A DNA stretch of 64,000 nt from Rebecca billardiae RCC1528 (lineage: Eukaryota; Protista; Haptophyta), in assembly GCA_965240325.2 (NCBI GenBank), contig OZ251231.1, positions 372,001-436,000 of the forward strand, read 5' to 3'. A program made the position numbers and the translations under genes. A model generated the notes under the pieces. That model worked only from the letters and a program-made list of their open reading frames with translations. It was not told where the DNA came from and did not search any database. Below, in pieces: positions 2,718-58,543 of the stretch; position 1 is the first letter of the stretch; each line of letters opens with the position of its first letter.

Positions 2718-5700
2718 ATGTGCACGACACCGCCGCGGCAGGGGCTGCGCCCCGCCGCGTGGCGCCGGCGTGCCGCACCGCCCGGCACGCGCCGCGTCGG
2801 CACCGCGTGCGGCCTCCTTGCCTGCCTCTGCGCGCGCGCCGTCGCGCCGGAGGAGGTACGGGACCGGCTGCGCGCGGATGTGCCGGCGTGCTTCGACGAC
2901 GCGCCCGAGTACGACGAGCCCACGTGCGCGAATGTGACGGGCGCCATGTGCGTGCTCACCGCGTGTCGCGCTCGCTCGTGGCCCCCGTGATGCGAGTGGG
3001 TGTGGTTCGCCCTCGCGGCGCTGCGCTGCCGATGCGCCCTGATGTGTGCACCGCGCGTGAGGGTGTGCTGGGAGATGCGTGCGTCGCGCTCGTCGCCGCT
3101 GCCGCACGCGCATCACCCCACACAACCCTCAACCGCCCTGGCCCGCCTGCGTCGCCCTGCTGCCCTCCCCGCGTGTGCGCGCGCCCGCGCGTGCTGCGGC
3201 GCGCAGCGAGCTGCTAGGTAGAGGGTACACCGGCACACTGCCCACGGAGGTGGGCCGTCTGACGGCGCTCGGCCAATTGTGCGCGCAGCAGCACGCGCCC
3301 GCGCGCCGCGCGACGGCCGTCGCAGACCCCGCCCATCCTCACCGCAGCAGCAGCCGCGACGAGGTCGCTGCAGCCTTATTCATTCATCTGCACTCGTGAA
3401 TCAAGCGGCCACCACCCAACCCAAGGCTACCGCCGATGATGCCTCGCCCTGCTCACCTGCCGGCGGCTGTCCGGCGATGGTCGCTCCCCCCCCCCGCGCG
3501 CGCGTGCGACGCGCAGCGTGATGCACGCGACCTCGGCCAGCGGCGCGCTGCCCACGGAGCTCGGCCGGATGGGCGGTCTCACGCACTTGTGCGCGCGGCG
3601 CCGCGCATGGCGCGCGGCCCGCGTGCGCCGGCTCCGCACATGCTCCCGCCTCGGCCGCCTCTACCCGCGCGCCACGCCCCGCCGTCGCCCCGCCGCCTGG
3701 TGCCTGCCGCCCAGCCAGCGCGTGCAGCTGCTGCGCCGCGGCTGCTGTGCAGCCCCGCTGCTGCCGCCTCACTCCGCGCGCGCGGCCCACCCTGCAACGC
3801 CCGTGCCCACCGCGCGCCGCCTCCGTCCGCGCGCGCTTCACACAGCCGGGCGATCAGCACACAGCTGAGCGGGCCGCTGCCGACCGAGCTGGCCCTGCTG
3901 GAGCGGCTGCAGCAAGTGTGCGTGCCCGCGCGCCGAGTGCGCACCGCCGCGCGCGCCGCCGCCACCCGCCACGCGCCGCCGCACCGGGCGCTGCAGTGCG
4001 CGCGAGCGCGGATGCGTGCGATCGACAAAGCGCCGCGCGGTGCGAGGCTGTGGCCCTATGGCTGCGCACAGCCTTCCCCCCGCGCGTCTCGTCACGCGCG
4101 CACACCCCTGCCTGTGACGTGCGCTGCGCTCCAGCTTCCTGGTGGACAGCTCGCTGGGCGGCGCGTTCCCTCCGGAGCTGCTCAGCGCACACCAGCAGCC
4201 TGGCTGGGGCTCGCTGCAGACGTTGTGCGCGCGCACCGCCGCGCACCGCGCGCGCGGGCGCGGGGGCGCGGGCTGCTGGCGGCGGCGTGGCGGGCGGGCC
4301 GTGCGGGCGGGCGCGGGCTGCTGCGCCGCCCCCGGCCGCGCGCAAATGCGCGGGCAGCCCGCCGCGCCACGGGCTAGGCCTGCGCTCAGGGGCCCCAGTG
4401 CCATCCACCACCGCCTCCGCGCGGAGTCTGAACGTGCCCTCCGGTTCAGACTCCGGTTCAGACTCCGCGGAGCCTGATGCCCTCCCCGTCCGGACTGACT
4501 GGCGGCCGACCACGGCACGCACGCGCCTGCTGCGCCCTGCGCCCCCCCGGCCCCCTCCCTCTCTCCCCGCGCGCGTGTGCGTGCCGATGCAAATTGCATG
4601 CAGCATGTACGATGGACTGACGCAGGCGACCGAGGCGACCGGCTTCTGCGCGGACGGCGGCTGTGTGTGCGCGGCCGCGCCTCTCGACTCAGACGGTCGC
4701 TTTCAGCCGGACCCGGCGACGCTGCTCCAGTGCCCCTCGCCGCCGCCGCCGAGGCCGCCGCCGAGGCCGCCGCCGCCGAGCCCGTCGCCGCCGCCGCCCA
4801 ATCCACCGCCGTCGCCGCCGCCGAGCCCGCCGCCGCCCGCTCCGCCGCCGAGCCCGCCGCCGTCGCCACCGCCGCCCGCGCCTCCGCCCTCGCCGCCGCC
4901 GCCGCCCGTGCCGCCGCCCGCGCCGCCGCCTTCGCCGCCGCCTACGCCACCGCCCGCGCCGCCGCCGAGCCCGCCGCCGCCCGCGCCGCCGCCGAGCCCG
5001 CCACCGTCACCGCCGCCGCCCGCGCCGCCGCCCTCGCCGCCGCCCACGCCGCCGCCCTCGCCACCACCGTCGCCACCTCCACCGCCGGCGCCGCCGCCGT
5101 CGCCGCCGCCACCCACGCCGCCGCCCAGCCCGCCGCCCAGCCCGCCGCCGCCCAGCCCTCCACCCGCACCACCGCCCTCGCCGCCGCCACCACCCGCGCC
5201 GCCGCCCTCGCCGCCACCGTCGCCGCCGCCGCCGCCGCCACCGCCGCCCTCGCCGCCGCCTTCGCCGCCGCCCACCCCGCCGCCCTCGCCGCCCCCGCCC
5301 TCGCCGCCGCCCTCGCCGCCGCCCTCGCCGCCGCCCTCGCCACCGCCACCGTCCCCGCCGCCGTCCCCGCCGCCACCCAGCCCGCCGCCCGCGCCGCCGC
5401 CCACGCCGCCTCCCAGCCCGCCGCCCTCGCCGCCGCCCTCGCCACCGCCCTCGCCGCCCCCGCGTGCGCCGCCCTCGCCACCGCCTTCGCCACCACCCTC
5501 GCCGCCTCCACACGCGCCGCCCGCGCCGCCACCGCTGCCACCGCCCTCGCCGCCGCCGCGCGCACCGCCTGCGCCGCCACCGTCGCCGCCACCGTCGCCG
5601 CCGCCTGCCCGGCCGCCGACGCCGCCGCCCACGCCACCACCGTCACCGCCACCGAGCGCGCCGCCCTCGCCACCGCCCACGCCACCACCGTCACCGCCAC

Positions 5701-8437
5701 CGAGCCCACCGCCCTCGCCACCGCCCACGCCACCGCCCAGGCCACCGCCGTCGCCGCCGCCGTCGCCGCCACCGTCGCCGCCGCCCGCGCCGCCGCCCGC
5801 GCCGCCGCCCGCGCCGCCGCCGAGCCCTCCGCCCTCGCCGCCGCCCCATCTGCCGCCGAGCCCGCCGCCCTCCTCGCCGCCCGGTCCGCCGCCCAGCCCG
5901 CCACCCGCGCCGCCCCCGGGTCCGCCGCCCTCGCCGCCACCGCCCCCTCCGCCGCTGCCACCGCCCTCTGTACCGCCGAGCCTTGCTCCCTCGCCGCCAC
6001 CGTCGCCGCCGCCGCGCCAGCCGCCATCGCCGCCGCCTGAGGCACCGCCTGCGCCTCCGCCCTCGCCGCCGCCCTCGCCGCCACTCAGCCCGCCACCCCG
6101 CACGCCGCCGCCGAGCGCCCCGCCCCGATCGCCGCCGCCGCCGCCGCCGTCCGCGCCGCCACCGCCCTCGCCGCCGCCCTCGCCGCCGCCCTCGCCGCCG
6201 CCCGCGCCGCCGCCCTCGCCGCCACGCGCGCCGCCGCCCGCGCCGCCGCCCAGCCCACCGCCCGCCTCGCCGCCCGCGCGGTGCGAGGGGGACAGCTGCT
6301 GGGCGTACGCGGCGCGCCGCTGCCCAGCGCCAGCCGCCGAGCCCTCCGCCTGCGGCTGGGCCCTCGGCGGCTCCGCGTACGCGCGCTGCGCCGTGTTCCT
6401 CGACCTCGACGCTGACGAATCCTGGGACGCGGCCGCGGAGCCGAACGGCGAGACGGACGGCAGCGGCCGGTATCAGATGCTTGTGGGCGGCGCGGGCGCG
6501 GCGGCGGGGTCGCCGGCGGCGGGCGGCGGGGGCGGGCAGGCCGTGGGCGCTGCCGAGCGCGGCGGCGCGCCGCCGCTGCTGGTCTGGATGCTCCCGCCCG
6601 CGCCTGGCTGCGTCGATGCCGCCACAGGCCTGCCGCCCCCCGCCCCGCTGTGCACGCGCGCGCGCGCGGCTGTGCTTTCATCCCTCACCACACTGCTGTG
6701 CGCTGGGCGCGCGGCCGCGGCGCCGACGGCCGAGGGCTGGCTCCTGCGCGCGCTGGGGCTGGGAGCGCTGCTCGGCCGCGCGACGGTGCACGAGTACAAC
6801 CCGCAGCTCGCGCTGAGCGCGCTTGGCGCTGTATGCGCGCGCGCGCACTGCGGCACCACCGCGCCCACTGCGGCGCCGTGCGCGAGCGCGCGCGTGGTTC
6901 GGTGCCGCGTTGGGCGCGCGTGCGCGCCGCCACCGCCGATGCCGCGCCTCGCTCCGGCCTCGGCGCGCGCTGCCCTCGCGCCCGCCCGCTCCGGCCGTGT
7001 TCGCTGCCGCGCGCAGGCGGTGGGCGACGAGCGCACCGCGGCCATCCGCAGCGCGCGCGCACAGGCGCAGCTCACGGCGTGCGCGGCGTCCGCCGCGCAG
7101 CTCGCCCTCGCGCTCGGCGGCGCGCGCAACGCCACGGAGGCGCGCGCGGCCGGCGGCGCGGCGCTGTCGGCGCTGGCGCGTCTGCTGCTCGCGCGTGGCG
7201 AGGCGCTCGAGGCCCGAGACGCGGCGGAGGGCGGCGGTGCGGGCGGCGCGGCGGACACGGCCACAGCACGCCCTCTGGAGGTGCGTGCGGAGAGCCGAGG
7301 ACTGCAAGGCATGACGCCAATGCGTGGCGCAGCCGCGTGAGGGCTGAGGGCAGGATGACCGATCACAGCGCACTCACGTGGCGGCGGCGCGCAACGCCGC
7401 GGCTGCCAGCAGTGCTGCCCCTGCTGCTGTGCCACTGGGCTGGGAACGACTGCGCTTGTGCTCCGGCTGACGACGCCCCGCGGCCCTGCACACCGCCCCC
7501 CTGCCCTCCGCCCCGCCCGCCCGCCTGCCCCCCGCTGCCGCCCACCCACACACACGGCCCGCCCTGCCGCTGCCGACGACTTGGCCCTCGCCTCCGCCAC
7601 CACCGCCCGGCCGCGCCGCGCAGGAGAGCGGCGCGCTGCTCGCTGTGCTGCAGAGCGCGCTGGGCACGCAGCAGGGGCCCGGGGCGGACGGCGCGCCGAG
7701 CGCGCGCGCGGCCGCGCCGGCGCGCGCAGACGCCCAGTCTGCCTTCGGCTCGGGAGGCGCGGCGGGCTCGGCGGCCGAAGCGAGCTACTACTCTGCTGAT
7801 GACGGCGGCGCGGGCGTGGTGAACACGACAGCGCTTGCGGCTGTGCTCGGAGCCAGCCTGCGCGTGCTCGGTGCCGTCGGCGAGACGGTGCGCGGGCCGC
7901 GCCGCGCGGGGGCGCCCCGCCCACCACCACCCCGCGCGAGGGCCGCCGCCGCGCGCGTGTGCACCCCCCCTAAGTCGCGTGCCGGGCAGCGGCGCGCGCG
8001 CGGGCCGTGCGGGCAGCCAGCCACGCTCACAGTCAGACTGTGTGGTACCCCCTGCGCCCAGCCCTGTGGAGCGGAGCCAAGCACAGCCGAGCGGGGCGTC
8101 TGGCTGCTCTGGGCACGCCACGCTCCCTGCACCGCCCAGCACGCCTGACGCGCGCCGCGTCCCCCACCGCGCGCCGCTCGCTCGCGCCTGCGCCCCGCCA
8201 GGCCGCGCGCAGCGCGCTGGGCGCGGACGGCACCATAGCCGCACTCACGCGCGCGGCGCGCCTCGCGCAGGCTCGCGGCGCTGAGCTGCTGGTGGCAGTT
8301 GGCAGCGGCGCGCTCTCGGAGGCGGAGGCGCTGTCCGAGCTGCGCGACGCGGAGGAGCAGGCTGTTGAGGCGGTGCTGCAGGCCGCCGCCCTCGAGGCCG
8401 AGGGCGGCGGTGGCGAGCCGTCCGTCGGCGGCGGGGA

Positions 8438-8845: not shown

Positions 8846-9130
<285 letters not shown>

Positions 9131-11765
9131 CACAGTGCAGGATTGGAATTTTCCGTGACGCTTCGGACGGTCCGCAGCTCGAGTCAGCGAATCCGGTCTC
9201 GGCCGGACAGTGGAACTCGGGTGGAAGCCGCGACTTCGCGGCGGACGGAGCCTCAAACGAGCGGTGCCTCGGCTCGCGGCGCGATCTACTCGGCGAAGAC
9301 CGACGAGGCTGCTCGCGGGCCCGACTATGCGTCGACGCGGGCTGGGGTCGTCTTCCGCGTGGCGCTGGGCAAGTTCCTCGCCGCTCTGACGGGTGCTCTC
9401 CTTTCGCCCTCACGGCGCGCGCGGTGCGTTTCGCGAGCTTCTTGCATGCGCCGCCCGCGGTTGCGCCCGAGCCTGATGCTTCAGTCGACACGGCAGGTGG
9501 CTCGCGCAGGGTGGGATTGTGTGCGGGTGCCGCTGGCGGTGCGTCTCGCCCTCCTGAAATTGTGTGGGAGGCTGTGACATTGCACGCGTACACCCCGCCA
9601 CGCCCGCGGCCCGCCCGCGCAAACGCCGCGCCGCGCAGTTGTCTTTGACCTCGAGCGAGCCTGAGGCGTGGAGGCGACCGACGGCGGGGTGCGACTTGCC
9701 CACCGACCCGAGCCGCATCACCCAGCGCAGCCTCGCCCGCGACGACGCTTCGCCTGGCTGCCACTGCTCAGCCGCGTGCAAGGCGGGCTGGGCGACGTCT
9801 TTCGGCCGAGCGCGGCTGCAGCGCAGCACGCGAGAGGCTGGAGCGCCATGACGCGGATGGCGGAGCGGGCTTTGGGCTGGCTGGCATGAGCCGCCAGGCT
9901 GTACCGTCCGCGCAGATCGCGCTCGGCCCGGCCGCAGCCCTCCTGAGCGCGCGCCTCAGAGCTGAGACTGATCACGTGCACGCGCACAAGCCACACTGCC
10001 GTGGCTGTGTCGAGCAGCTGCGTGTGCTCGAGGCGCGGCGCTCGCACGGGCCACGCGGGCGCAGCGGGTGCGCGCAGCTGGCGCACGCAGTGCCACGTCC
10101 TGCCGCGCCAGTTTGGCGGCCGTCCGCCCCCCCGAGCTCGAGTTCTGCGCGCTTTGCGACGGCGCGGCCGGCCGCGCCCATCTTCATGCTTGGGCACGCC
10201 AGCATGGCCGCCGCCGGGCCTGCTGCGCGCGCCGAAGCTGGAGGGCGGAGGAGGGCGCTGGGCTGCTCCTACGGCGTGCTGCAGCCCGGGCAGGCTTTTC
10301 CGCGGCGCGGCGAGGCCGTCGCGCCTGCTCGCCGCCGTCGAGTCGCCCGTGCTGAGTGACCGTCGGCCGCATGTGCTCGGCGGCACCGCAGGCAGGCGTC
10401 CCATACCAGTGTGCTCGAGCCGCTGCGCGCACCCAAGGCGAGCTGCTCGAGCGGGCTAGGTGGGCCCACGGAGTGCGCGCAGCTGGCGCACGCAGCCCCG
10501 CGTCATGGGGTGTCGGTTTGACGGTCGCCAGCCCCCGTGGGCTCGAGCTCTGTGCGCTTCACCACGGAGGTGCCGACGGCGCCCCGCGGCGCGCAACGGC
10601 GTGGCAGCATGGCCGCCGCCGGCGCCGCCGCACATGCCGCCGCTTACGGGCAGTCGAGAGCTTGGGGCAGCACCTACGGCATGCTGCAGCTCGGGCGGGC
10701 TCTGCCAGCCTGCTGTGGCGTGATCGCGCATTTTCCAGACCGTCGACTCGCCCGCGCTGCATATTTGTTTGCTGCGCGTGCTCGACGGCGCCGCTGCTGC
10801 CGCTACGGCCGCGCGTTGCTGCGTCGCGAGCGAGCCCGATGCGAGCTGAACGGCGGCGTGCTCATCGCTGCTGGCGCAGATGGGCGCGTCATGGTGGCCA
10901 CGCACGATGCTGAGTGCTCGCGCGTGCCAGACGAGGCGCGTGCTCGCGCTGTGGCTCAATGTCCGGCAGTGCGCGTGGCAGGCCGCAGCTGCTCGACAAC
11001 AGAACCAGCGGGCAGTGATCGGGCTGCGCGCGCGCAGCTGATGGCGGCGAACGAGCGAGCCCGCACCGCCGCGCAAGGGCTGGGCGACTGGCGCCGAGGT
11101 GGCGCGCACGTCGTCCGCTGCCGTTGGCATCGCGGCGGACGCTTCAAGCTCGTTCGGCCGGCGTGTTTTCTCCGACGCCCACCTGCGAGCGCTGCCGGCA
11201 CCGTGCTCGGGCGTCAGTATCGGTGGGCTCGAGCACGCGTGGTGAGGCGCTCGGAGCGGTCGACGGCCATGATCGGGCAGCGCACGGTGGGCGCAGGCCA
11301 CGCGCACGCCAGCGCCCCGCGTGGCGTGGCTTCACGGGGCGCAGCCACCAGGAGACTGTGCTGCGACGAGCTCGGGCGCGCTCGGGCGCCGCTGCTCTGC
11401 ATTTTCCCGAAAAATCGGTTTTCGTGCCCTCGACCGGCGTTATGCCGCCGGGGTGGCCGCAGCTGCGCTCGGAGCAGCGCGCACGGGCACCGCCGTGTGC
11501 GCCCGCCCGCTTTCGCCGCCGCCGAGCTCGAGCACAGCGCTGCGCGGGGCTGCGTAATGCCAACGGCGCATGATTTTTTGCCCGCGCCGAGCGCGCGTCG
11601 GCGCGCGCAGCGCGCTCAGGTGTGGCCTGCTACCAAGGTCTGTGCCACGATTCGACGCGCCTATGGTGCGCCGAATTTAGGCGCACCGCTTCAGAATTGT
11701 CCGATGATTCGACTAGTGGTGCGGACAACTTAAAACGTCACCCTGAGCAGTTTTCCGGCACTGTG
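9131..11765. mobile_element. Non-autonomous DNA transposon with CACAGTG termini and interrupted 55-bp TIRs, inserted in a (TATG)n microsatellite
   Basis: The left end and the reverse complement of the right end align ungapped over 55 bp (33 identities in blocks). Both ends are flanked by TA, and no convincing internal ORF is present. Confidence 0.8.
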
Positions 11766-11843
11766 TATGTATGTATGTATGTATGTATGTATGTATGTAT
11801 GTATGTATGTATGTATGTATGTATGTATGTATGTATATATATA
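11766..11843. repeat. (TATG)n(TA)n microsatellite
   Basis: Directly visible. Confidence 0.99.
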
Positions 11844-14583
11844 TGTGTCTAGCCGTCCTCGTGAACGCCGACGCCAACTGCTGGCCGAAGGTGGGCACGC
11901 CGCCTGTTGCCGAAAGATGTTGGTCGGTGCACGCGACGCGCCACCCGCGTGCGAGCCGCCGCCGCCGGCGACGCAGGACGAGCTTGGCTGGAGCCATCTC
12001 GCACGCCGCGCCTGGCGAAGCAGGCGGCAGAGGCCGGCGCCGGAAATCGATCTCCTGGGCGGCAGAACAACCCGGACAGACTGTTTGTCCGGGAGCAGCG
12101 CCCTTTGAGGCGATGGTCTGGTAGAGGGCGATGTGGCTGATGAGCGGCGCTGGCGCCCGGCGTTCTTGTCGTCCTCTTAGACAATCAGTTATTGTACCAA
12201 TAACCCCACATATATAAGCTGACGGCATACTGCACGTTAAAACATAAGCTAGCACGCAGTATTATTATAAACGACTGTACGGTGTATCTCGCCTGCCTGC
12301 AGATTGAGCTGCTGTGTGCGTCTCTGCTTATTAATATTATTCTTATCCCCAATACTACCGCGCAGGTTGCTTCTATACGAAGCAAGATGGGTTCGCCCCC
12401 GCGCGTGCGTGCTCGGCGGGCAGGTGGACGCCGCGAGAGGGCACGCGATGGCTGAGAGGCATCTTGCCGTGTAGTGCTCCATCAATGCACTCCCGACTCG
12501 CGACGGCGCCGCGTGCAGCACAGCCTGTGCCGTTCGGGTCATAGCTCCCGCACACCACAAGTTGGCTCCGCGCGAGGCGAGACGAGGTGTCCGGAGTGGC
12601 AACATGCGGCTGGGGATGTCTTTGTTGGTGCACGGAGCGCCAATCTCCGGCTCGGGGGCCAGTAGTGACAAAGCGTTCGCGCGCCAGAGCCCGCGAGAGG
12701 GGCGCGGGGTCAAAGTCCCCGGGTTTCCACTGTCCTTTCCGCCGCACCCCTCGCACAGCGAGGGGTGCTCGACCGTTACGGGAGATTAGATGCACCTGCG
12801 TTGAGGGCCTGCCGGACTGATCAGCAACCGATCGGGACGGAGAGATACTGCTGTGTATCCTCCAAAAAGCGACGCTTCGCGGGGCAGATGCTCGAGAGAT
12901 CGGACGATCAAGCGAAAGTCATAGGTTGCATTTTTAGGCCCACTACGGCGAGACTTACTCACGTCATTAACAGAAGCTTACCCGCTGCTCAACTTTCGTC
13001 CCGCTGGAGCGACGTCTCGACCAATGGCGCGCGTCGGATGAAAGAAAGGTTCTCTGATCTCGCGTAATCTGGCGCTGGGGCTCAGGAAGTACCGGGAACG
13101 CAGCGGACTACGACCTCACCCTCGTCCAAGTGCTCCGGAAGGCGCTCAGGCCGCGGCGGCATCTGCCGTCGCGCCGCCACGTACCCCAGGCCGAGGCGGT
13201 GCTCCATCCCGGCCCTGCTCCCTCAGAGGCGGGCAGGGCTGCGGCCGCGGGTGGCGCACTGCCGCCTGACCTGGTTGGAAGGCGCGGACGCATTCTATAT
13301 GTGTCTGCTGGCACTCTCTGACTCCAGTGAGCCTGACGCTGCTGTCGCTTGCGCCCGTTGCATACCAGCACGTCATTAAACTGATATACAGGGGTAGCCT
13401 CAACCATTAATTGTCACATTCTGACTGAGCTGCACGCCACTGCTCAGGAACCCTGCCCCCCTCCGCCTGGGCTGATCCAGGCGGCCCCCACGGCCCGTGC
13501 ACGCCGGTTTCGACCCCGAGCGCGTCAGCCCCAGCGCGCGTGGGCTGGAGTTGGGCACACCAGCAGGTCACACGGCTGCAGGCGTACAGCCTGTCGCAGC
13601 TGGCCAGATCCTGCCACAGGCTTGTCGTCACTGGTCGCGGGCCGTGTGCCCACACACTGACACAGACCAGGCCTCAGCCTGAATTGTGCCTTGGCAGTGG
13701 ATCTGGTACCCCCTAGGGAGGGCTGCATGCCACCTGGGGGGGAGCTCATGGGATGCAGCTGCTGTGGCACAGTGCCCAATCCCGCACCCCCACCTGCGCA
13801 GACCTGCGCTTCAAGGACCTGTCCGCTGTCGGGTCAGCTCCCCTGCATACTGGGAGGCCAGCAGCAGGCCCAGCAGCAGCACCCGCTGACACACCCAGAG
13901 GGTGGCCAGCCACCCGACTAGTGACTGGGGGCTTAGGAGTGGGGCTCAGTGCAGCCAAGAGCTCCGTGCAGCCTAGGGTAGCTGCTGGTGGCTGGCCTGC
14001 ATGGATTTTATTCAAGCTGACCACCGCCCGGCCCACTGCTGCCTGCAGCACCCCTCGCTGCACCCACCTGGGCTGCTGCACATGCGCACTCTGGATGGCA
14101 CCACAGCCCAGCATGGAGAGCTGGCCATAAGCAGCCACCCACTCGTCAGAATGGCCAGGGAGTGGGCTGTAGTGCTAGACCACATCGTCTAGCCAGGCCG
14201 AATCGTCGTCAAGTGCCGTCACATCATATATATATATACGATCGACATGATGAATAACGAGTACTGGTAACGACATCATCACACAAGTGATGCCTGCTGT
14301 CATCAGCAGTGCATGGCACGACAAACAGAGATACAGCAGCGCTAATATTGTTGAGACCCCTGTATATCGCGTCATATCGTCATCTGCGAAGTGCGACGAG
14401 CGCAGCAGACGTCATCGTCGCGTCTGGGACTTGGTGCGCGCGCCGCGCGCCGCGTGAGTGCCGCGCCTCGGAGTCACGGACGACGATCATCGGATACAGC
14501 ATATAATATTATCATATATATACGTAGCGCGCGGCCGAACAGCACTCAGCAGCTGCAGCAGCGACGCCGCTGGTGCGGCGTCG

Positions 14584-31578: not shown

Positions 31579-32233
31579 CTAGCTCAAGCTGTCGTAGTCG
31601 TTAGCTTTAGCTAATAAGTTGGGCACGCTTTGTCGCTTACACTTACAGCACTGTCAGCAGGTCGCTGGGCCACCGTGCTGCATGGGCAGCCGATTAATAT
31701 TTATAATATAAATATAACTACTTAATTCTTAAAGCCAGCATCGGTCTGTACTCGTATTCGTAGCAGTGATCTGTGATGTACTACACGGCGACTGCCGTCG
31801 CGTAGCGCAGTCGCGCGTATAGTCACCGCGTATATCGTCATCAGCCATCAATATCTGACGAATAATCAGTCGCGAATAATGGATTAATCTCGTCTAGTAA
31901 ATTAAGGATAAATGCGATCGGCCGCGGCCCGGGGCCTAGTGGGGTCAGAGCTCCGACCGTTACGCTCTCCGGGGTGCCACAATCTCCCGAACTGATCTCT
32001 TAGCATGAACTATCACACGGGTATTTACTTGGACGAACTAGTTAGTAGGCGTTACTAAGGCTTAATTCCAGGGTCACAGCAACGACTTCTTTTTTAAAGC
32101 GGCCGTTAGCGTGTCCATCGGCCGGATTATTTTACGGAAAATTACTATGCGCTGCGCGCGCGCGCCCAGCGGGCGGCGCGCGCGCGCGACTAGTCCCCCC
32201 TGCATGCCCTAACCGTCAGCTGCCTGATTCCCG

Positions 32234-35200
32234 CTACCCAGCCCCGCTGCCGTCGCGCGCGACATCCGCGCCGTCGCTCACCGTCGCCGAGGCCGAGCGC
32301 GCCGCCGCCCTCAATTTGCTCTTGAGTGCCGACAAGTCCTCCTCCGGAAGCCCAGCCTCCTCGCGCACGAGCTTGCGCGCCGCGATGTACTCGTCGACCA
32401 GGTCGTGCGCGCCGGCCTTCGCCTTGCGCTGCCATTCGCGCTGCCGCTTGCCCTCCTTCTTCAGCCAGAGCCGCCGCACCTTGTCGCCGAACTCCTCCTC
32501 CGCCCACGTCGCAAGCGACACGCGGCGCAGGAGCTGCGCGGCCGTCGAGATGTGCGGCTGCACCGTCGACTTCTTCCCCTCGGCATACTCGCGGACGAAC
32601 GAGTCGAGCGACTTGCGCGCGTTCACGAGCGGCATCGCCCGCTTGGTCACCTGCACGAAGTGCTCCTGCACCTGCTCGTCCGCGAGCTGCACGAGGTGGC
32701 CCCACCGCCTGATCAGCAGAGGCAAGACGAACCGCGCGATCGTCTTGTACTGCGAGGTGACCGGCTTGAGGACGAACAGGTCGAGCGCCTCGACCCACGC
32801 CGTCGCGGCTGCCTCAACCTCGTCCGCACGCTTCGCGCGGCCATCGTCATCGTCCGTGTAGCCGCGCGAGGAGACGAGGTCGTGCAGCTGCCACGTGAGC
32901 ATGAGCAGGCGGCAGAAGAGTGCCATGCGCGGCATGTCCGCGATCTCGGCCTTCAACTGCGCCTCGTCGTCAAAGCCGATCTCGTCCATCATCTCGCGCT
33001 CCTCCTCGTCCTGCATGTCCGAGATGCGCGCGTCCTCGTCGCCGCTGTCCGCCGCGCCCGCGCTGCTCGCGCCGTCGAGATCCGCGTCGATCTTCCACAC
33101 GACCTGCACCAACGCCCAGAAGACCGCGTGCGTGCGCAGCAGCGAGATGCCGTCGCCGCGGAGGTCGGGCACGCCGATCTCGTTGGTGCGCGTGCGCCGC
33201 TTGGGCACTCGCACAGGCACGCCCGCGTTCTTGAACAGGACGATCAGGTCGTACTTGGTGAGCGGCGCGTCGCGGCCGTACAGCTCGTCCACCTCCCTCC
33301 ACAGCGCCGACAGCACCGGCTTGAAAGTGTCGTGCTTGAAGTGCATGATGCCGGGGAAGTAGTTGACGTGCTCGAGCTCCAGCTGCGGTAGCAGCCACTG
33401 GTTCTCGTGCAGCTTCTGGTCGACGATGCGCTCGGCGTCCTTCGAGTCGTCGGCGAGAAGGCGGCGGCGCTTGGTCATCTCGGCGTCGCACTCGCCCTGG
33501 TCGGCAGGCGTGACCTTGCACGCAGGGCACGTCACGCCCGGGTCCGCGTGGCACAGCGCGCGCGCGCGCTTGTACGTGCGCAGCCGCCACTGAGGCGAGC
33601 CGCCGTCCGCGCCCGCCTCCTTGACCGCCCACACGTTGAAGCGGAGCGGCGAGACGTTGTGCGAGCCCTGGCCGGCGAGGCTGGCAAGGTTGACATAATC
33701 GCCGGTGTACGTGATGATGGCCTTCTGCTCCTCCGCGTAGTCGGCCGCCTCGCCGCCGCCGCCAAAACCGCCGCCGGCCGCGCCGCCCGCCGCGCCGGCA
33801 GCGCCGGCCGCGCCGGCCGCGCCGGCCGCGCCGGCCGCGCCGCCGGCCGCGGCGGCCGCGGCGGCCGCGGCGGCCGCGGCGGCCGCGCCGCCGGCCGTGC
33901 CCGCGCTCGGGTTGCCAGCCGCGCTGCTCGCCGCGCCGCCGGCCGCGCCACCGGCCGCGCGGACGCCAGCGCCGGCGGTGCCGCCAGCCACGCCGCTGCC
34001 GCTGCCGCTGCCGCCCGCGCCGCCCGCGCCGCCCGCGCCGCCGCCAGCGCCCGCGCCCGCGTTACCAGCCGCGCCGCCGGCCGCGCCGCCGGCCGCGCGG
34101 ACGCCAGCGCCGGCGGTGCCGCCAGCCACGCCGCTGCCGCTGCCGCCCGCGCCGCCCGCGCCGCCCGTGCCGCCGGCCGTGCCGCCGGCCGTGCCGCCGG
34201 CCGCGCCGCCGGCCGCGCCGCGGGCCTCGCCGCGGCCCGCGCCGCCGGCCGCGCCGGCTGTGACGGCCGCGGCCGCGCCGCCGGCCGCGCCGGCCACACG
34301 TGCGGTGGCGGCAGCAGGCGGCGTCGGTCGCGGCGGAAGCAGGCCGCTCCGGATCACGTCATTGATCGCGTCGGCGTGCGCACTCCATAACTCGGACATG
34401 TCCGAGTCCGGCCGCTCCGAGATGGCGATCGCCTCTGACGACGCGAGCGCGCCGTAGTTGACGCCCCAGCCGTTGCGCACGATGGCGATCGTGGCCGTGC
34501 GCGAGTGAGCCGTGTTGCCCGCGTCCGCCGAGAGGAGGAGGACGTGCGGATGCCCGCGCGGGCGCGCGGACTTGCCGTTGCGCTCCGAGCGATCCAGCAC
34601 GGCGTGCACGGCCTGCGCCCACGGCCGCGCCGCCGACTCGCTGCCGATCATGAGCACGCCCGCGCCCGCGTGCTCGCGATCGCGCTGCGCGACCTCTCGA
34701 GAGCCAGCCGCCGGCGGCGGGATCGGGTGGCGGATCGGCTCGCGGCCGAAGCCGCCGCGGAAGACGGTGCGAGCCGAGTGCTCGCCCGTCACCGGGTGGA
34801 TCTCCTTCCCCACCCACTCGCGCCACGTGTCGAACTGCGCGTCCGTGACGTTCTTCGAGACGAGGTAGCCGGCGACGTCGTGGTGCGTCTGATGAGATTG
34901 AATCTCGCGCACAACGCCCACTGCGCCGCGGCGCTGCTGGAGGTAGGCGTGCCTCGCCCACGGCTTGCGCGAGCCGTCGTCTGCGCCCTCGAGCATCTCG
35001 TGCAGCACGAGGTCCATCACGTCGTCGGGCGTGCCACGCAGGATGTGCTCGATATGGTCCGCCTCCCCCCGCCTGCGCTTGCGGCACGCGTTGCTCGAGA
35101 CCGAGAGAGATGGGCGCTGAGCGCGCTGCCGATGAGCGCCGTCCAGCCCGTTCAGCTCGGCGAGGTGCTCGAACTTGCCGGCGGCTCGGTCGGCGCGCTT

Positions 35201-36979
35201 GCGCGCGGCGTCCTTGTCGCGCTTGAGCTCGACAAGCTGCGACTGCTGCTCGTCGCAGAGCGACTGGGCGTGCGCGCACTGCTGCTCGAGCAGCTGCTGC
35301 GCGTGCAGCGCAGCCGCGAGCTCGTGCTCGACGCCGCTCAGCGCGTCAGCGGCGATGTGCTCGGTCGCGGTGAGGCGGCGCTCCAACTCGAGGGCCCGAT
35401 CGCGCTGCGCGTCGGCGGCGCGCTGCGCAGCTGCGGCCCGCGCGTTCGCCTCTTCGAGATCGCGCCGAAGCTTCGCCTGCGCCTGCTCCGCCTCGGCGTC
35501 GTGGCGGGTGCGCGCATCCGCGCTGTGCCCGGCGCGGTACCCGGCGAGCACAGCGCGCCTCTCCGCGGCAGCAGCGGCGGCGCGCGCGGCGGCGATCCGG
35601 TCGAGGGCCTCGCGCTCGATGTTCTCGCACTCGAGCTTGACGGCGGCGATCACCACGTCGAGAACCGGCTCGAGATCGACGGCGGCCGAGTTGACGATGT
35701 CCTCGCGCTGCCGCACCGCGTCGTCGCGCTCGCGCTCGAGCTCGCCGTTGAAGTGCTCGAGCTCGGTCACACGTGTGCGCAGCGAGGTGAGCTCGAGCTC
35801 GGAAGGGACGCTGCGCGTGCTGTGCGAGCGCCGCAACTGCTGCTCGAGCTCGGCCACGTGCTGCAGCTCGGCCATGCGCCTTCGACCCCGTGCTGTCTGC
35901 TCGTCCGCCTCTGCCTCGGGCGTCGGCGCCACGCTGCCAGCCGAGCGCGTGAGAGGCCGCTGGCGGGTGGGCGCGGCCGAGAGCAGCACGGCAGGCGGCG
36001 GCGACATGAAGGCGGGCGAGGCGACGGCAGGTGACCTCGGCGGCAGCAGCTCTTCCGCCGACCCACCGACGAACGGCTGCGCCGCCGCGCCAGCGAGGAG
36101 GAGTGGCGGCGCGGGCTGGCGGGAGGCGCTGCGCGTGACCGCGGGCGACGGCGCAGCGGCAGCAGGAAAGCTCAAGGCGGAGGAGGCGTTGGTAGTGGCG
36201 GGCGAGAAGACGAGGTGGTCGGCGTGAGCGGGAAGAGACGAGAAGCGGGCAGCGACGACGGCGGGAGACAAATCGGCGGCGGCGGCGGCGGCTGATGCCG
36301 CCGCCTCGCCGCCATCAGCTCGAAGGAGAGCGAGCGCGCGCGCGGTCGGTGGACGGGCGGCATCATGCGGCGAGGACAGCGGCTGCGGCTGCGGCCGCGG
36401 CCGCGGCCGCGGCCGCGGCTGCGGCGGCTGCACGAGCGGCGGAGGCAGGTGCGGAGGCGCCGACGGCAGCTGCGGCGGTGGCGGAAGCGACGGCAGCGGC
36501 GGCGGCCCCAACGGAGGCAGCGGCTGGGTGTCCGCGACCGCGTAGGGCATCACGGCGGCGGACGATGGATCGGATGGCGCGTCGGCGCAGAGGCCGGGCG
36601 TGAGACCGAGGACTGGAACATGCGAGAGAGGCTGAGAATGAGAATGCAGATGGGCATGCGTGGGATCGAGGGCAGAGAGATCGAGGGGGGGATGCGGCGC
36701 GACCGCGCCGTCACCAGCTGGCGCGCGACGCCATCGGGCGCTGCTCGCTGCTCGGCGAGTGGCGGTCAGCTGCTCGCGCTGCGAGCGGCGCGCTTTCCAG
36801 TCCGCGCGCTTGCGCCGTGAGACGTCGGACTCGGGCGGCGCCGCCGGTGCCGCCGCGGCGGGCGCCGCGGCAGGCGCTGCCGGCGGCGCGCCCGTGAGCT
36901 CCGACGGGCCCTTCGTCACAGACGGCGTGCGCCGCCAGCCCCGCCTCCGCCGCGGCGCATCGAGACGCCCTGCGCGCAC
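32234..36979 (-). CDS. RAG1/Transib-like DDE transposase (true start uncertain; may be spliced to the upstream ORF)
   Basis: Colinear motifs: RPSLSVSSNACRKRRR (NBD-like), YLVSKNVTDAQFDTWR (DDBD-like), LLLSADAG (D1), YTGDYVNLASLAG (D2), PGIMH, DLRGDGISLL, VTSQY...LPLLIRRWGHLVQLADEQVQEH (E). Confidence 0.75.
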   Translation of the reverse strand: MRAGRLDAPRRRRGWRRTPSVTKGPSELTGAPPAAPAAAPAAAAPAAPPESDVSRRKRADWKARRSQREQLTATRRAASSARWRRAPAGDGAVAPHPPLDLSALDPTHAHLHSHSQPLSHVPVLGLTPGLCADAPSDPSSAAVMPYAVADTQPLPPLGPPPLPSLPPPPQLPSAPPHLPPPLVQPPQPRPRPRPRPQPQPLSSPHDAARPPTARALALLRADGGEAAASAAAAAADLSPAVVAARFSSLPAHADHLVFSPATTNASSALSFPAAAAPSPAVTRSASRQPAPPLLLAGAAAQPFVGGSAEELLPPRSPAVASPAFMSPPPAVLLSAAPTRQRPLTRSAGSVAPTPEAEADEQTARGRRRMAELQHVAELEQQLRRSHSTRSVPSELELTSLRTRVTELEHFNGELERERDDAVRQREDIVNSAAVDLEPVLDVVIAAVKLECENIEREALDRIAAARAAAAAAERRAVLAGYRAGHSADARTRHDAEAEQAQAKLRRDLEEANARAAAAQRAADAQRDRALELERRLTATEHIAADALSGVEHELAAALHAQQLLEQQCAHAQSLCDEQQSQLVELKRDKDAARKRADRAAGKFEHLAELNGLDGAHRQRAQRPSLSVSSNACRKRRRGEADHIEHILRGTPDDVMDLVLHEMLEGADDGSRKPWARHAYLQQRRGAVGVVREIQSHQTHHDVAGYLVSKNVTDAQFDTWREWVGKEIHPVTGEHSARTVFRGGFGREPIRHPIPPPAAGSREVAQRDREHAGAGVLMIGSESAARPWAQAVHAVLDRSERNGKSARPRGHPHVLLLSADAGNTAHSRTATIAIVRNGWGVNYGALASSEAIAISERPDSDMSELWSAHADAINDVIRSGLLPPRPTPPAAATARVAGAAGGAAAAVTAGAAGGAGRGEARGAAGGAAGGTAGGTAGGTGGAGGAGGSGSGVAGGTAGAGVRAAGGAAGGAAGNAGAGAGGGAGGAGGAGGSGSGSGVAGGTAGAGVRAAGGAAGGAASSAAGNPSAGTAGGAAAAAAAAAAAAAAGGAAGAAGAAGAAGAAGAAGGAAGGGFGGGGEAADYAEEQKAIITYTGDYVNLASLAGQGSHNVSPLRFNVWAVKEAGADGGSPQWRLRTYKRARALCHADPGVTCPACKVTPADQGECDAEMTKRRRLLADDSKDAERIVDQKLHENQWLLPQLELEHVNYFPGIMHFKHDTFKPVLSALWREVDELYGRDAPLTKYDLIVLFKNAGVPVRVPKRRTRTNEIGVPDLRGDGISLLRTHAVFWALVQVVWKIDADLDGASSAGAADSGDEDARISDMQDEEEREMMDEIGFDDEAQLKAEIADMPRMALFCRLLMLTWQLHDLVSSRGYTDDDDGRAKRADEVEAAATAWVEALDLFVLKPVTSQYKTIARFVLPLLIRRWGHLVQLADEQVQEHFVQVTKRAMPLVNARKSLDSFVREYAEGKKSTVQPHISTAAQLLRRVSLATWAEEEFGDKVRRLWLKKEGKRQREWQRKAKAGAHDLVDEYIAARKLVREEAGLPEEDLSALKSKLRAAARSASATVSDGADVARDGSGAG

Positions 36980-37773
36980 ACCTTGAGCAGCTCGCCGCTC
37001 ACGTCAGCGCGCCCCTTCTCCTTCTTGAAGCGCCATGGCTGCATCAGCGCGTAGCGCTCGGCGTCGACGCTCACGCCGCCCTGCGCGTCCTGTGGCGCGT
37101 GCAGGCCGCCCTGCGCGTTGAGCGAGATCACGCCCACGCGCACGTGCGCGAACTGCTGGTACGCGCCGTCCGGATCGAGCCGATGCATCTCGGTGTGCTC
37201 GATCGAGAGCGAGTGCACCGTGTTGATCGCCGAGAGGTGCCGGTCCGTGCGCGCGCCGCCGAGCGCGTTCGCCCGCAGCGGCTTCGGGACGCGGCGCATG
37301 CCCAGGTTGAGCCACGTCGAGATGCGCTCGGGCTGGTACGAGCTCACGGTGCGCCGCGTGCGGTCCTTCTCTCGCGTCTCGTGCACGACGCCCTGGTCGT
37401 CGAGCGAGGTGAACATCGGCGAGTAGAGGGCGTCACGCGGGAACAGCGCCAGCTTGGCCTTGCGCAGCAGGTTGCCCTTCTTCCGGCTGCCCTTGATGGC
37501 GACGAAGTTGTTGACCTTGCGCTTGACCTCCGCCAGGTAGTTCTCGTTCGGCATGATCGAGTGGTCCACCTCGCTCGCCGCCTCGCGCGCGCGCAGCATG
37601 AGCGTCTCGTGCTCAGCCGCCTTCTCCGCGGCCGCCGCGGCCATGCGCCGCCGCACAGATGCGGCAGAGACCTTGCGCCCGATGCCGTAGCCGCCCTTCC
37701 GCTGCAGCTTGACCTTCTTCGGCTTCGCGCAGGAACGCTTGCCCTTGCCCACGGTAAGCACAGCCGTCGTCAT
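36916..37773 (-). CDS. Basic transposon-encoded ORF of unknown function, or first exon of the transposase
   Basis: 285-aa ATG-initiated ORF, Lys/Arg-rich N-terminus (NLS-like), coding-like codon use; candidate donor AAG|GTGTGC at ~36981. Confidence 0.7.
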   Translation of the reverse strand: MTTAVLTVGKGKRSCAKPKKVKLQRKGGYGIGRKVSAASVRRRMAAAAAEKAAEHETLMLRAREAASEVDHSIMPNENYLAEVKRKVNNFVAIKGSRKKGNLLRKAKLALFPRDALYSPMFTSLDDQGVVHETREKDRTRRTVSSYQPERISTWLNLGMRRVPKPLRANALGGARTDRHLSAINTVHSLSIEHTEMHRLDPDGAYQQFAHVRVGVISLNAQGGLHAPQDAQGGVSVDAERYALMQPWRFKKEKGRADVSGELLKVCAQGVSMRRGGGGAGGARRL

Positions 37774-38653
37774 TGCTGCGCGCGGCGAGCGCGGTCCCGC
37801 GCGGCCGCCGCCGGGCGCAGCCGCAGCAAGTTAGTCTGATGCAAATTCCCGGTCACCCATGCAAAAGTAAGCGTTCCCGCTGAGCATGTGCGTGGATCAC
37901 GAGTAACCCGCCGCCTGAATACAAACTCCGCGCCCCTCCATACACTTCCTGCATCCCCGCGCGCGGCGGCGTGCAGGCGGGCGCAGATTCGCACCGTGTT
38001 ACGAACAGACCTAGCAAAGTAGATCGGCGTGGCGGGTCGGGACGCGGAGCGGGTGCGGGGCAGGTGGGGGATAGGTTGGGGAACACCCGCGATTAGAGCA
38101 CCGGTGGCGCAGCGGCGACGTGGACGCCGCCACACGCGCACGCACGGCGCACGCGCGCACCGGGACTTTCAACTTCGCGTCGGAGCTCTGGACGACCGTC
38201 GGTTGGTCCGAGCGGCGCGAGGAGGCTCTCGGGATTGTGGCCGGACGCCCGGGTTGAGCCGTTAACGGCCGAAAATCAATTTGTTGGAGTTTCCTTAACG
38301 GCCGCTTTAAAAAAGAAATCGTTGCTGTGGGTGTAGAATCCGCCTGTGCCAATTTCAGACTAAAATGTGATCTAGACGGTGCGATTCTGGTGCAAATAGC
38401 GAGATCGTCACCTTGGAGATCGTTATTTATTCGTGTATCTCCCCTCGGACTAATGTTGCCGAGATCGCGTCGAGATTGAGGTCGTATATCTCCAGTATAT
38501 TATTGTGACATTTTTTCGCAGAACTTGTCAGCGTGACCCCAGCTCATTTCAGGCGAATATTGACATCCCGAAGTTTGCTGAGAGCCTCATCCAGTCAAGA
38601 CGACAGGAAGTTGGATTTTGGGCCACGCACCCCCCAGTGGGGCTCTGACCCCT

Positions 38654-52214: not shown

Positions 52215-55050
52215 TCAGCGGCCGTGCTTGGCGGCCGAGCGCGCGTTGCGCATCGCCTCCACGTGCCGCTGCTTGGCGCGCGACGCGTTGTCCATCTCTG
52301 TGTGCAGCTCGTTGTACAGCTTGGTGCCGAGCCCCTCGTCGCCGCGGCACAGCACCTGCACGAAGTACGTGGCGGGCTTGCGGCAGAGCTTCTTGCCGTC
52401 GATGTCGGCGGGCAGGTTGTCGACGCACGCGCGGTACCGCCCCTGGCGCACCGCGCCCAGCCACTCGGCGAGCGCGGCGCGGCTCCACTCCTTGGGCGCG
52501 GGCGGCGGCGGCGCGAGCGCGCCCACGGCCGCGGGCGCGAATGCCACGTCCAGCCTGTGCTCGCTCGTGCGCCCGTCGAGGCCGCACATCGCGGTGACGG
52601 TGTGCAGCGTGTGCAGCGTGTGCTCCGTGTCCGTGCAGCCGGGCGAGACAGTCGCGAGCACGCCCACGAGCGCGCGCGCGTGCGTGAACGACTCGGAGAG
52701 CACGCGCGTTAGCGTCGATGCGCGGTAGGGCACGTGCCGCGCGCGCGCGCCGCCGCCGCCCGCCGCGGCGCTCGCCTCCGCCGCGGCGATCGCGCGCAGG
52801 CACTCCTTGAGCGCGTGCAGCGAGGCGTTGATCTCCGCGCCCTCCTTGCGCCGCGCGGCCGAGTGGAAGGCGCTGTCCTCCTTGCGCTCCGTGCCTGCGC
52901 TCGGCGGTTAGGGCGGCGGTTAGGGTTTAGGGGTTAGGGTGCGGCGGCGGTCGGTGCGGTGTGGGCAAGCGCGGGAGCGCGTGCGCGCGCCGGTGTGCGG
53001 TGGCGCGCGCGCGACACACACACGCGGCGCGGCGGCGACGGGTCGGGAGCGCGGCGCGCGCACCCGCGCAGTCCACGAGCACCAACCGTCCGAGCGCGCC
53101 AGACGACGAGTGCGCGCCGTCCGCAACGTCGACGCTGATCACGGCGTGTGAGCGTGATGAGGTGGCGTTCGCAGCCGTCTCCTCCGTCGCACGCCGCGAC
53201 TTGCCCAGCTGTGCCGCGCGGCGGGGGCGGCGCGGTGCGCCACGGGGCGTGCGCGCGAGAGGCGAGTGTGTGAGCGCTGGCTGCTGCTGCGGCTGCCGCC
53301 GGCGCTGCTGCTGCCGCTGCCTCTGCCGGCGCGGGGCCGGGCGCCGCGCCGCGCCGTGGCCGCGCCGTGCGCCAACGCGCCCACGCAGCGCGCGCGCGGC
53401 GCGTGCCCTGCCCCGCCACACGGCCCTCCGCCCCTCGCCCCGCGCACGGCGCCTCCCACGAGCGCGCGAGGCGGGCGCGCGGCCCCCCGGCGCGCGGCGC
53501 GCACGCACCTCGATCGCCGAGATCAGCTCAGACGCCGAGCGCACCGGCCGCGCCTCGGCGCCTACGAGCGCGGTGCGGCCCGCGCCGTCGTCCATCAGAG
53601 TCACGTCGCGGCCGGCTGCGCGCGCGGCGCGGCGGAGCGAGGGTTAGGGTTAGGGTTAGGGTTAGGGTTAGGGTTAGGGCGGAGCACGCGACGGCAGCGC
53701 GACGGCGTGAGACGGGGCGTGCCTCGAGCGCGCTCGGCGCGGCGGCGTCGAGCGCTGCCGGAGCCAAGCGCTGCAGTGCAGCGCAGCGCAGCGCAGCCGG
53801 CCAGCTGTCGCGCGGGCGCGGGCCGCAGGCAGCGGCGCCGCGCGCACGCGCGCACGCACACACACGCACGCACGCACGCACACGGCGCCAGGCCCGACGC
53901 GTGCGCCCGCGCTCGCTCGCACGCACTCACGGGCGCGCGGGCGCGCGGGCGCGCATGCGCACGCGGCGGTGGCGCACCATCCGAGAGGAGGTCTCGCACG
54001 CGCCGCCCGCTCAGCTCCACAAAGGTGACGGTGACGGCCAGCCCGTGCGCGCACGTGCGCACGTCCTGCACAGCGCAGGGCGGCGCGTGCGCGGCGCGTG
54101 CGCGGCGCGTGCGCGGCGAGCCGAGGTCAGAGGCGGCCAGGGCGGCGTTGGAGGGTGGCCGCCGCGCGCACGCCGGCCGCCGCTCGCAGGTAGCCGCGCC
54201 CGCGGCGCTCGGCGGGTGCGGAACGCGTGCGGCGCGGGTGCGGCGAGGCAGAGGCGAGGCTGCGGCGCGGAGGCGCGCGGCGCGGGTGCGGCGCGGGTGC
54301 GGTGCGCGCCGCACCTCAAAGAGCTGCGCAGCGGCGTGCTGCTCAATGGCGGTGCACGTGTGCGTCTTGCCGCTGCCTGTCTGCCCGAACGAGAAGAGCG
54401 TGGACACGCCGCCCTCGCACACCTGCACGTTAGGAGTGGGGTGAGGGTGAGTAGGGTGAGTAGGGTGAGTACGGTTTAGGGCACGCACGCCGCGAGGGCC
54501 CGGCGCGCGCGGAGCGGGGCTCGTCGTGTGAGGCGCGCGCGCACCGCGCACGCGCTGCCAGGGTCGCGCGCGCGCGCCGCGGTCGCGCCGCGCGCACGCA
54601 CCTGGCTGACCAGCGGGCGTGCGCACACGTCGTACACGCGCTCGTTGGTCGCGGTCTCCCCAAACGCGGCGGCCGAGTGGAACGTCGTGTGCCGGACGAA
54701 CATGCGTTTCAAGTCCGCCTCGTGCAGGCACGTGTGCACGGTGAGGCAGGTGGCGGCGTCGGCCTCGCCGCCCGTGCCCGCGCCCGCCGCCGCCGCGGAC
54801 GGCACGCTCACCACGTCGAACTCGCCCGAGTCCTGCTCGCGCGCGAAGAGCGGCCGCTTGCGCACGAACACGCGAAGCCAGCCGTGTGCCGCGCGCCCGG
54901 CGCGCGCCTCCGACACGCGCGCCGCGACCGCCGGCCCGTGCGCCAGCCGCCATTCTTCGATCGCCGACACGAACGAAGGCTTGTTGTCGCGCCGCAGCCG
55001 CCGCTTGTCAAACATCTGGCGCGTCGCCTTGCCCGTGTTGTTCGCCTCGT

Positions 55051-55089
<39 letters not shown>

Positions 55090-56353
55090 ACGCGCCCGCC
55101 TCGCCGCGTACGCTCGGCGCCGCTGCCTCGGCGCCGCCGGCCGCGCTCGGCGGCGCGGGCGCGGGCGCGGGCGCGGGCGGCGCGGGCGTCGCGGCGGCCG
55201 CTGCGGCCGCGGCCGCGGCCGCAGATGTTGCGGCCGCCGAGGCCGCTCGCCCGCGGTGCGACGCGGGCCGCGCCGCCGCGCTCGGTGGCGGCGGCTGCTC
55301 GTGCGCCCACGCGTCGTGCGCGCTGTCGCGCGCGCTCGGCTCCGCCTCCCGCGCGGCGGCGGGCGGCGGCGGCGGCGGCGCGTGGCGGTGCTGCGCGCTC
55401 GCCTGCGGCTGCGCACTCGCGCGCTCACTCGCGCGAGAGCGCGCGCCGCCGCGCAGGGCGTGGGCGTGCGCATGGGCCGGCTCGGCGGCCGCGGCGCCGT
55501 CGCGGCCGAGCGCAGAGGACACGGCCGCGACCATCTCAGCCGTCGTGTGGCCCGCGCCGCCGCCGCGCGGCGAGGCGGCAGCGACGGCGGCGGCGGCAGC
55601 GGCGGCGGCTGGGCCAATGCCCGCACCCGCGCCCGCGCCGCCGCCGCCGCCGCCGCCGGCTCGTCTCTCCTCCGCCGTCCCCAGCGGCCCGCTCCTGCGG
55701 CGCGGGCGGAGGTCAAGCGACGACAGCGCGCGCTGCACGCTGCCAGGGCTCTCCAGCGGCATGCCGCCCGCGCCGCCCGCGCCGTCCGTCGGGTGCGCGT
55801 GTGGCGGCAGCACGATGGAGGGCGGCGGCGGCGGCATGTGCGCGTGCGCGGCGTGCGCGGTGTAAGCGGGCGGCGGCGGCGCTGGCGCATGCTTGGGCGG
55901 CGTGCTCCCGCGCCCGCTCCCGCGCCGCGCGGCCATCTCACCGGCCGCCGCCACCGCCGCGGCCGCGGCGGCCACCACCTGGCGCCTGTGCTCTGCGAGC
56001 GTGCCGCCGCCTCCGCCCGCGCCGCCGCCCTCCGCCGAGCCCGCGCCGTCCGCGCCGCCGCCGCTGCCGCGGTCGAGCTGAAACCAACGCCTGCGCACGC
56101 GCCGCGCGGGCCGGCCGTCGGCGCCGGCCTGCTCGACGGCAGCGGCGTGCGCAGCAGCGCGCTGCGCCTCCGCCGCCTCGCTCCGAAAGTGCCGCTCGGC
56201 GTGGGCAGCGCTCGTGTCCGCCGTCACGCCCGCGCCGTCGGCAGGCACCGCGCCGGCCGACGCACGGCGCTGGAGTCGACCCGCGCGCCACGCGGCGATG
56301 GTGCGGAGTGCGGAGTGCTCGACGCCTCCGCCCTCCACGCCGTGCTGCTGCTC

Positions 56354-56386
<33 letters not shown>

Positions 56387-57792: not shown

Positions 57793-57827
<35 letters not shown>

Positions 57828-58543
57828 GCTGAGTGCGGGCTGGAGCTGTCGTCGGCGGCCGAGTCGCGCGCGTCGGCGAAGGCGTCGTTGTCGATCTCGT
57901 CCGAGTCGAACGCCTCGGCCTCGTCCATGCCGATGTCCTCGCCGTCCTCCAGCTCGTCGTCGTCCTCCGCGTCCGCGAAAGCGCTCGGGTCATCCGGGCC
58001 GCCGAGCCCGGCGGCGCCGCGGCCGCCGCGCTCGCGCTGCGCCTGCTGGCGGCGGCGGATGCGCTCGTTGCGCAGCGCGCTCGCGCGCTCCATCGCCTCG
58101 CGCCGCCGCGACGCCCACTCGTTCGCCGCCGCCGAGTTGGCCTGCTGCTGCCGCTGCGTGAACGGCGCGCGCGGTGACGTCGACTTGTCGCCGCCGCCCG
58201 AATCGCGCGCGCGATCGGCGCGCTCGAGCTGGAGGGCCATCTTGCCCTCGAGCCGCGCGCGGCGCTGCTGCGCGACCTGCTGCTGACGCTGCGCACCGAT
58301 ACGCTCCATCTCGTTGCGCAGCTCGTTGAACAGCTTGCGCGCCATCTCGTCGTCGCCGATCATGTGCGCCATCGCAGCGACCGACATGCGCGAGAGACGC
58401 CGGCCGTCCACGCTGCCGAACTTGGGCGCGAGCTTGGCGAAGCGGCCTGATTGGCAGGTGGACATCCATTCGCGCACCTCGTCCACCCCCCAGTCCTTGG
58501 GCGGCACCGCGAGGGCGCCGTTCTCACCCGCCCCCATCGCCAT
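52215..58543 (-). CDS. Kinesin-13-like motor with N- and C-terminal SAM-like domains (multi-exon)
   Basis: VFVRKRPL, FGQTGSGKTHT, NATSSRSHA, LVDCAGTER, EGAEINASLHALKEC, HVPYRASTLTRVL, TEHTLHTL. SAM-like KDWGVDEVREW..DGRRL..ARKLFNEL and KEWSRAALAEW..DGKKL..GTKLYNEL. Confidence 0.9.
52906..52940. repeat. Degenerate TTAGGG tract at an intron 3' end
   Basis: GGTTAGGG..GGTTAGGGTTTAGGGGTTAGGG next to acceptor at 52895. Confidence 0.8.
53640..53679. repeat. Interstitial telomere-like (TTAGGG)6 at an intron 3' end
   Basis: Perfect array ~25 nt from acceptor at 53616. Confidence 0.9.

Follow-up and report, generated by a model that had tools for sequence, protein, structure and literature searches.

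The window, by which we mean the whole 64,000-nucleotide stretch of DNA analysed here, carries at positions 9131-11765 a 2,635-bp element whose two 55-bp ends agree letter for letter with the reading given in the original prediction. The element starts with CAC and ends with GTG, and the heptamer CACAGTG is present at both tips in every copy that was read. The left end, on the forward strand, is made up of block 1 (9131-9142; CACAGTGCAGGA, which is the heptamer plus 5 nt), a 12-nt spacer 1 (9143-9154; TTGGAATTTTCC), block 2 (9155-9163; GTGACGCTT), a 6-nt spacer 2 (9164-9169; CGGACG) and block 3 (9170-9185; GTCCGCAGCTCGAGTC). The 55-nt right end (11711-11765, reverse strand) mirrors this layout, with block 1 at 11754-11765, spacer 1 at 11742-11753, block 2 at 11733-11741, spacer 2 at 11727-11732 and block 3 at 11711-11726. 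Between the two ends, blocks 1, 2 and 3 are identical at 11 of 12, 8 of 9 and 13 of 16 positions, respectively, and the 12-bp and 6-bp spacers at 1 of 12 (unrelated) and 0 of 6, so that the spacers are equal in length but not in sequence, exactly as had been claimed. Copies of the TA target-site duplication, whose 2-bp length is taken from 27 of 27 independent copies, stand at 9129-9130 and 11766-11767. The host sequence interrupted by the element is a (TA)n/(GTAT)n microsatellite (8848-9130, resuming at 11766-11845), which fits the AT-rich preference of the family as a whole.

The interior of the element (9186-11710, ~70% GC) was found to be non-coding in ORF, Pfam, Rfam and tblastn searches. 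Its five longest ORFs had no match in Pfam, long ORFs being expected by chance at such GC content, the element had no match in Rfam, and tblastn with the transposase encoded elsewhere in the window and the 33 database relatives of that protein detected no transposase remnant in it. Since no coding capacity was found, we regard the element as non-autonomous. We also considered the term MITE, which would suit a non-coding, high-copy element but is reserved for those under ~0.8 kb; at 2.63 kb, the element was classified as a non-autonomous DNA transposon. The interior contains a 405-bp tandem duplication (10010-10301 vs 10415-10706, 72% identical). The left spacer 2 together with the start of block 3 forms the palindrome CGGAC-G-GTCCG, and CGGAC/GTCCG occurs six times in the two 250-bp ends vs five times in the 2,135-bp interior. 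This ~4.7-fold enrichment is weak and comes from a small count, and CGGAC/GTCCG may be a subterminal motif of the element.

Copies of the element were sought in a 72-Mb, 41-contig eukaryote-type assembly. A pattern consisting of the heptamer, block 1 and block 2 gave 68 forward and 68 reverse matches, against 0 for the reversed control pattern, and these 136 ends dispose of the possibility, named in the original prediction as one that would undo it, that no other copies exist. A second pattern, block 2 plus block 3 with up to three mismatches, gave 69 and 68 matches on the two strands, nearly all of them paired ~2.6 kb apart. The exceptions to this pairing were a variant on contig 18 that measures 3.47 kb, a few ends without a listed partner and one 88-bp fragment (locus L001); candidate solo ends turned out to be either 2.6-kb copies with one mutated end or this fragment. 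BLAST with the whole element scored 40 copies out of 185 candidates, nearly all of them complete, so that the family has at least 40 full-length members, and in local BLAST against loci L001-L030, each holding about half a copy, identity was 95.1-99.9% except for two partial matches. Pairwise divergence among 27 independent full-length copies averaged 0.18%, with a maximum of 0.42%, and their alignment is invariant over 76 bases at the start and ~80 bases at the finish. The family is a recent burst of ~68 copies from one master copy. The contig 18 version (914462-917935) is ~840 bp longer than the others, carries a C as the ninth base of each end and is probably either a nested insertion or a member of an older subfamily. 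On contig 10, the copies at 772460-775092 (L049) and 831096-833728 (L048) have 1.5-kb flanks that are 99.9-100% identical on both sides, which implies that no less than 5.6 kb of DNA, including the element, was duplicated ~59 kb away; a third copy (809683-812315) lies between them.

All 27 independent insertions examined are flanked by a perfect 2-bp direct duplication, and its sequence varies: TA in nine cases, AT in four, CA in three, GT, TG and AA in two each, and GC, TT, TC, GA and CT in one each. The window copy lies within a (GTAT)n tract, where a duplication of 2, 6 or 10 bp is formally possible, and it is the other family copies that fix the length at 2 bp. The target duplication of the original prediction is thus corrected to 2 bp (TA) despite the ambiguity of the microsatellite. 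The flanks of the insertions (60 + 60 bp) have a mean GC content of 42% vs ~70% for the window, which points to a family that targets AT-rich DNA, and many insertions lie within TA-type microsatellites. GC content within the window ranges from 58 to 83% per 2 kb, and two segments, 4001-8000 and 54001-58000, reach 80-83%, which is extreme even for this genome. Insertion flanks often carry other repeats as well. One repeat immediately to the right of the element, at 11900-12216, matches DNA beside the insertion at locus L038 with 99.4% identity, so that the AT-rich landing sites are islands shared by several repeat families.

The full block pattern occurs at only two sites in the window, which are the two ends of the element, compared with 0 expected from 100 shuffles. 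The consensus of both ends reads CACAGTGC(A/C)GGA, 12 unrelated nt, GTGACG(C/T)TT, 6 unrelated nt and GTCCGCA(G/C)C(T/A)C(G/T)AGTC. When the left and right ends are aligned without gaps, 33 of 55 positions are identical (60%) and these identities form three blocks of 12, 9 and 16 nt. Of the 22 mismatches, 11 fall in the 12 positions of spacer 1 and 6 in the 6 positions of spacer 2, which leaves 5 for the other 37 positions. In 200,000 permutations, p was 0.0025 for mismatches gathered into so few runs and 0.0013 for two runs of such length. The blocks are not random decay, the alternative that the original prediction had set against its own reading (permutation p ~0.001-0.003). Past position 55 the two ends no longer align without gaps, a common GAATC being offset by 3 nt as judged by eye. 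The one mismatch in block 1, at position 9, coincides with the position that varies among copies. A copy of an older subfamily has a C as the ninth base of each end and differs in the far half of its block 3, and the shared C suggests that the two ends of the element were once more alike. An A-rich nonamer was looked for at an offset of 12 or 23 nt from the heptamer and none was present, as neither end is A-rich at positions 20-28 or 31-39; the spacers of the two ends are equally long, without 12/23 asymmetry. The lack of a nonamer and the symmetry of the ends in spacer length had both been predicted and are borne out by the sequence.

A second transposon in the window, 6.3 kb long (32075-38329, reverse strand), contains an ORF of 1,581 codons (32234-36979). 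It is bounded by continuous 34-bp inverted repeats that start with CACAGCAACGA and by a 3-bp duplication, GGT, and it is present in the genome in 10 identical copies. Its protein had no match in Pfam, no word-based homologue and no match in the PDB by sequence profile, and a HMMER search of 1.84 billion representative sequences recovered only 33 relatives. A model of the last 532 residues (mean pLDDT 67) could be superimposed on RAG1 residues ~700-985 with a Z score of 13-14 and an rmsd of 4-5 A over 240-270 residues. RAG1 or RAG-like chains filled the top 24 rows of the fold search (Z 11-14), the next unrelated fold having a Z of 7.8, and Foldseek gave weak E-values for the same model, the best being 0.15. 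The description of this protein, 20 kb away from the element, as a RAG1-like transposase therefore stands at the level of a predicted fold. The suggestion that a relative of it may mobilise the 2.6-kb element led us to evaluate the 6.3-kb transposon itself as the partner, and this we rejected, because the two sets of ends differ after CACAG, the duplications are 3 bp vs 2 bp, and no DNA common to the two elements was detected. The original prediction had itself observed that the inverted repeats of the neighbour share only CACAG with those of the element and that the duplications differ, and the two are indeed unrelated beyond these five bases. The two elements resemble each other in their CACAG start, in belonging to young, genome-wide families and in occupying the same AT-rich islands, whereas the neighbour differs in its continuous 34-bp inverted repeats of unrelated sequence and its GGT duplication. 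At one locus on contig 1 (L015:1533-1731, contig positions ~4966420-4966618), a copy of the 6.3-kb transposon ends ~40 bp from an older variant 2.6-kb copy, and just upstream two 2.6-kb copies (4960044-4962678 and 4963787-4966420) lie 1.1 kb apart. The genome also holds ~35 near-identical copies of an ORF of 466-471 codons, for example at 4456074-4456553 of contig 3. Over its end, this ORF shares 78% identity with the final 160 residues of the RAG1-fold protein encoded in the window, and it represents a more abundant related family.

In order to identify an autonomous partner, as the original prediction had proposed, we searched the genome with three forms of the block pattern; no coding or longer element with these ends was among the matches listed. 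Block 1 alone (CACAGTGCNGGA) had 146 matches in the genome, ~131 of them within the family, and the ~15 sites outside it are at chance level when compared with the 28 matches of the control and included no inverted pairs. Genome pattern searches for a donor element carrying either of the two spacers found none among the matches listed. Profile searches of the genome with Pfam Transposase_21 and RAG1 gave no matches, and neither did the controls. A separate family of ~8 copies, 1.8 kb long and likewise ended by CACAGTG, was encountered, for example at 358097-359896 of contig 15 and 3437515-3439310 of contig 5. Its ends, of which 35 nt were read from AGTG onwards (AGTGAACACGCCCCAGCGGCGrAGCGGACAAACAA), are near-identical to each other and have no block layout. 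This family, with the arrangement CACAGTG + 23 nt + ACAAACAA (ACAAACAAA), was discarded since its ends are unrelated to those of the 2.6-kb element. Several families in this genome thus have only the heptamer in common.

The block layout can be read in more than one way. According to the first reading, the ends would constitute a modular signal resembling an RSS, in which a RAG1-like transposase recognises the blocks at fixed 12-bp and 6-bp spacings and the spacing itself is under selection. The concentration of the mismatches in two runs, the exact spacing over 55 bp and the loss of alignment beyond that point speak for such a signal, as do the high mobility of an element with fully divergent spacers and the presence of RAG1-fold enzymes in the genome. 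Spacer sequence appears irrelevant to mobility, given that ~68 copies arose from a master whose spacers on the left are entirely unlike those on the right. However, all copies are clones of that one master, so that the fixed spacing was seen once, in comparing the two ends of a single lineage. No second family combining these blocks with different spacers turned up in the genome, according to three forms of the pattern and the matches listed for them, or in metagenome contigs, where the full end pattern had 0 matches and a looser pattern had 45 single matches, none of them with block 3 in place, which is the chance level. Furthermore, the 1.8-kb CACAGTG family shows no block layout in the 35 nt read, the 6.3-kb transposon has continuous inverted repeats, and the nonamer, the 12/23 asymmetry and the 5-bp duplication (here 2 bp) are all missing. 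For these reasons we consider a selected, RSS-like spacing plausible but doubtful.

The second reading, as simple as the one in which the blocks are bound, is that they are historical and without function, the master being a chimera or a gene-conversion patchwork of two related ends of which only the terminal ~12 bp matter. Spacer identities of 1/12 and 0/6 are at or below chance, and are more readily explained if entire patches were exchanged than by decay at single positions; the older copy, with the C that its two ends share at position 9 and the differing far half of its block 3, and the coexistence in the genome of families with unrelated sequence after CACAGTG are also in its favour. Such a replacement would, however, have had to keep the exact length in two separate patches, the older variant copy (95% identical over its left half) may have decayed after insertion, and the genome searches turned up no donor with either spacer. 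We therefore regard a patchwork origin, too, as rather unlikely. Among the more specific versions of block recognition, it seems improbable to us that the blocks at 12-bp and 6-bp spacings are a multipartite signal read by an algal RAG1-fold transposase, which would then move an element with ends unlike those of the element that encodes it. If this were true, it would place the RSS logic of a 'cleavage heptamer plus spaced binding boxes' in a branch with 2-bp duplications, far from Metazoa.

In regards to classification, Mirage proper is characterised by a 2-bp duplication (Repbase) and is defined by its transposase. The broader CACTA/EnSpm-Mirage-Chapaev-Transib (CMCT) assemblage has CA..TG termini and duplications of 2-5 bp (PMC12730594), and within it Chapaev elements have CAC..GTG tips with duplications of 3-4 bp (PMC4079192), whereas Transib is the one superfamily with 5-bp duplications and has ends of the form CACAATG + 23 nt + AAAAAAATC (PMC1131882). 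By its CAC..GTG tips and 2-bp duplication, the 2.6-kb element fits the broad CMCT group, which it resembles in its CA..TG termini, in a duplication that falls inside the 2-5 bp range and in the cut-and-paste spread of a non-coding derivative. It departs from that group in ends that are only 60% identical and arranged in three blocks, in its host, a GC-rich alga, and in having neither a partner found with matching ends nor the transposase that defines Mirage proper. The comparison with Transib and the RSS is less favourable. The heptamer of the element is the exact RSS consensus CACAGTG and fits CAC(A/G)(A/G)TG, and its ends, too, have conserved parts set apart by non-conserved spacers; in contrast, the element has a 2-bp and not a 5-bp duplication, no A-rich nonamer, spacers of equal length at both ends, and three blocks in place of two. 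An identity with Transib or the RSS was accordingly rejected on the 2-bp duplication in 27 of 27 insertions, the missing nonamer and the missing 12/23 asymmetry, and the likeness to RSS/Transib ends on which the original prediction had dwelt stops at the seven terminal bases.

A position outside CMCT, either as a relative of PIF/Harbinger-ISL2EU or as a Tc1/mariner-like element with a relaxed TA requirement, was considered as well. Among Harbinger relatives, duplications may measure 0, 2 or 3 bp (PMC12730594), and TA is the commonest duplication of the family (9 of 27). Against this, two thirds of the duplications (18 of 27) are not TA, by which Tc1/mariner is excluded, the CAC..GTG tips are a hallmark of CMCT, and CACAG tips recur on several RAG1-fold elements of this genome, so that we judge such a position very improbable.

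Taken together, our data make it likely that the element at 9131-11765 is a non-autonomous DNA transposon of the cut-and-paste type, very young and high in copy number, that is moved in trans by a DDE transposase of the RAG1-fold type. Such a transposase, supplied in trans, would most likely be one of the genome's own RAG1-fold (CACTA/Mirage/Chapaev/Transib-type) enzymes that make 2-bp duplications; that the genome has an enzyme with this predicted fold is seen in the 6.3-kb transposon of the window, and the link between transposase and element would depend only on the length of the duplication and on seven terminal bases. The catalytic core would cut at the CACAGTG tip in block 1 while the DNA-binding parts of the enzyme would grip the other two blocks (the centres of successive blocks are ~22 and ~18 bp apart, or roughly two helical turns each), with the bases between the blocks free to differ. 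Landing takes place in AT-rich DNA and involves a target cut with a 2-bp stagger. That the enzyme would bind the second and third blocks is deduced from a layout seen once, all copies going back to a single master.

As known now, the element is an ordinary non-autonomous transposon that resembles the V(D)J signal in seven bases and no further. Nevertheless, ~68 copies at 0.18% divergence point to a RAG1-fold-type transposition system that is currently, or was very recently, active in this alga. The asymmetric ends of the element may serve as a natural footprint of the end positions that the enzyme tolerates losing and, if the partner is identified, the two would make a convenient pair for studying end recognition by enzymes of the CACTA/Transib/RAG group.
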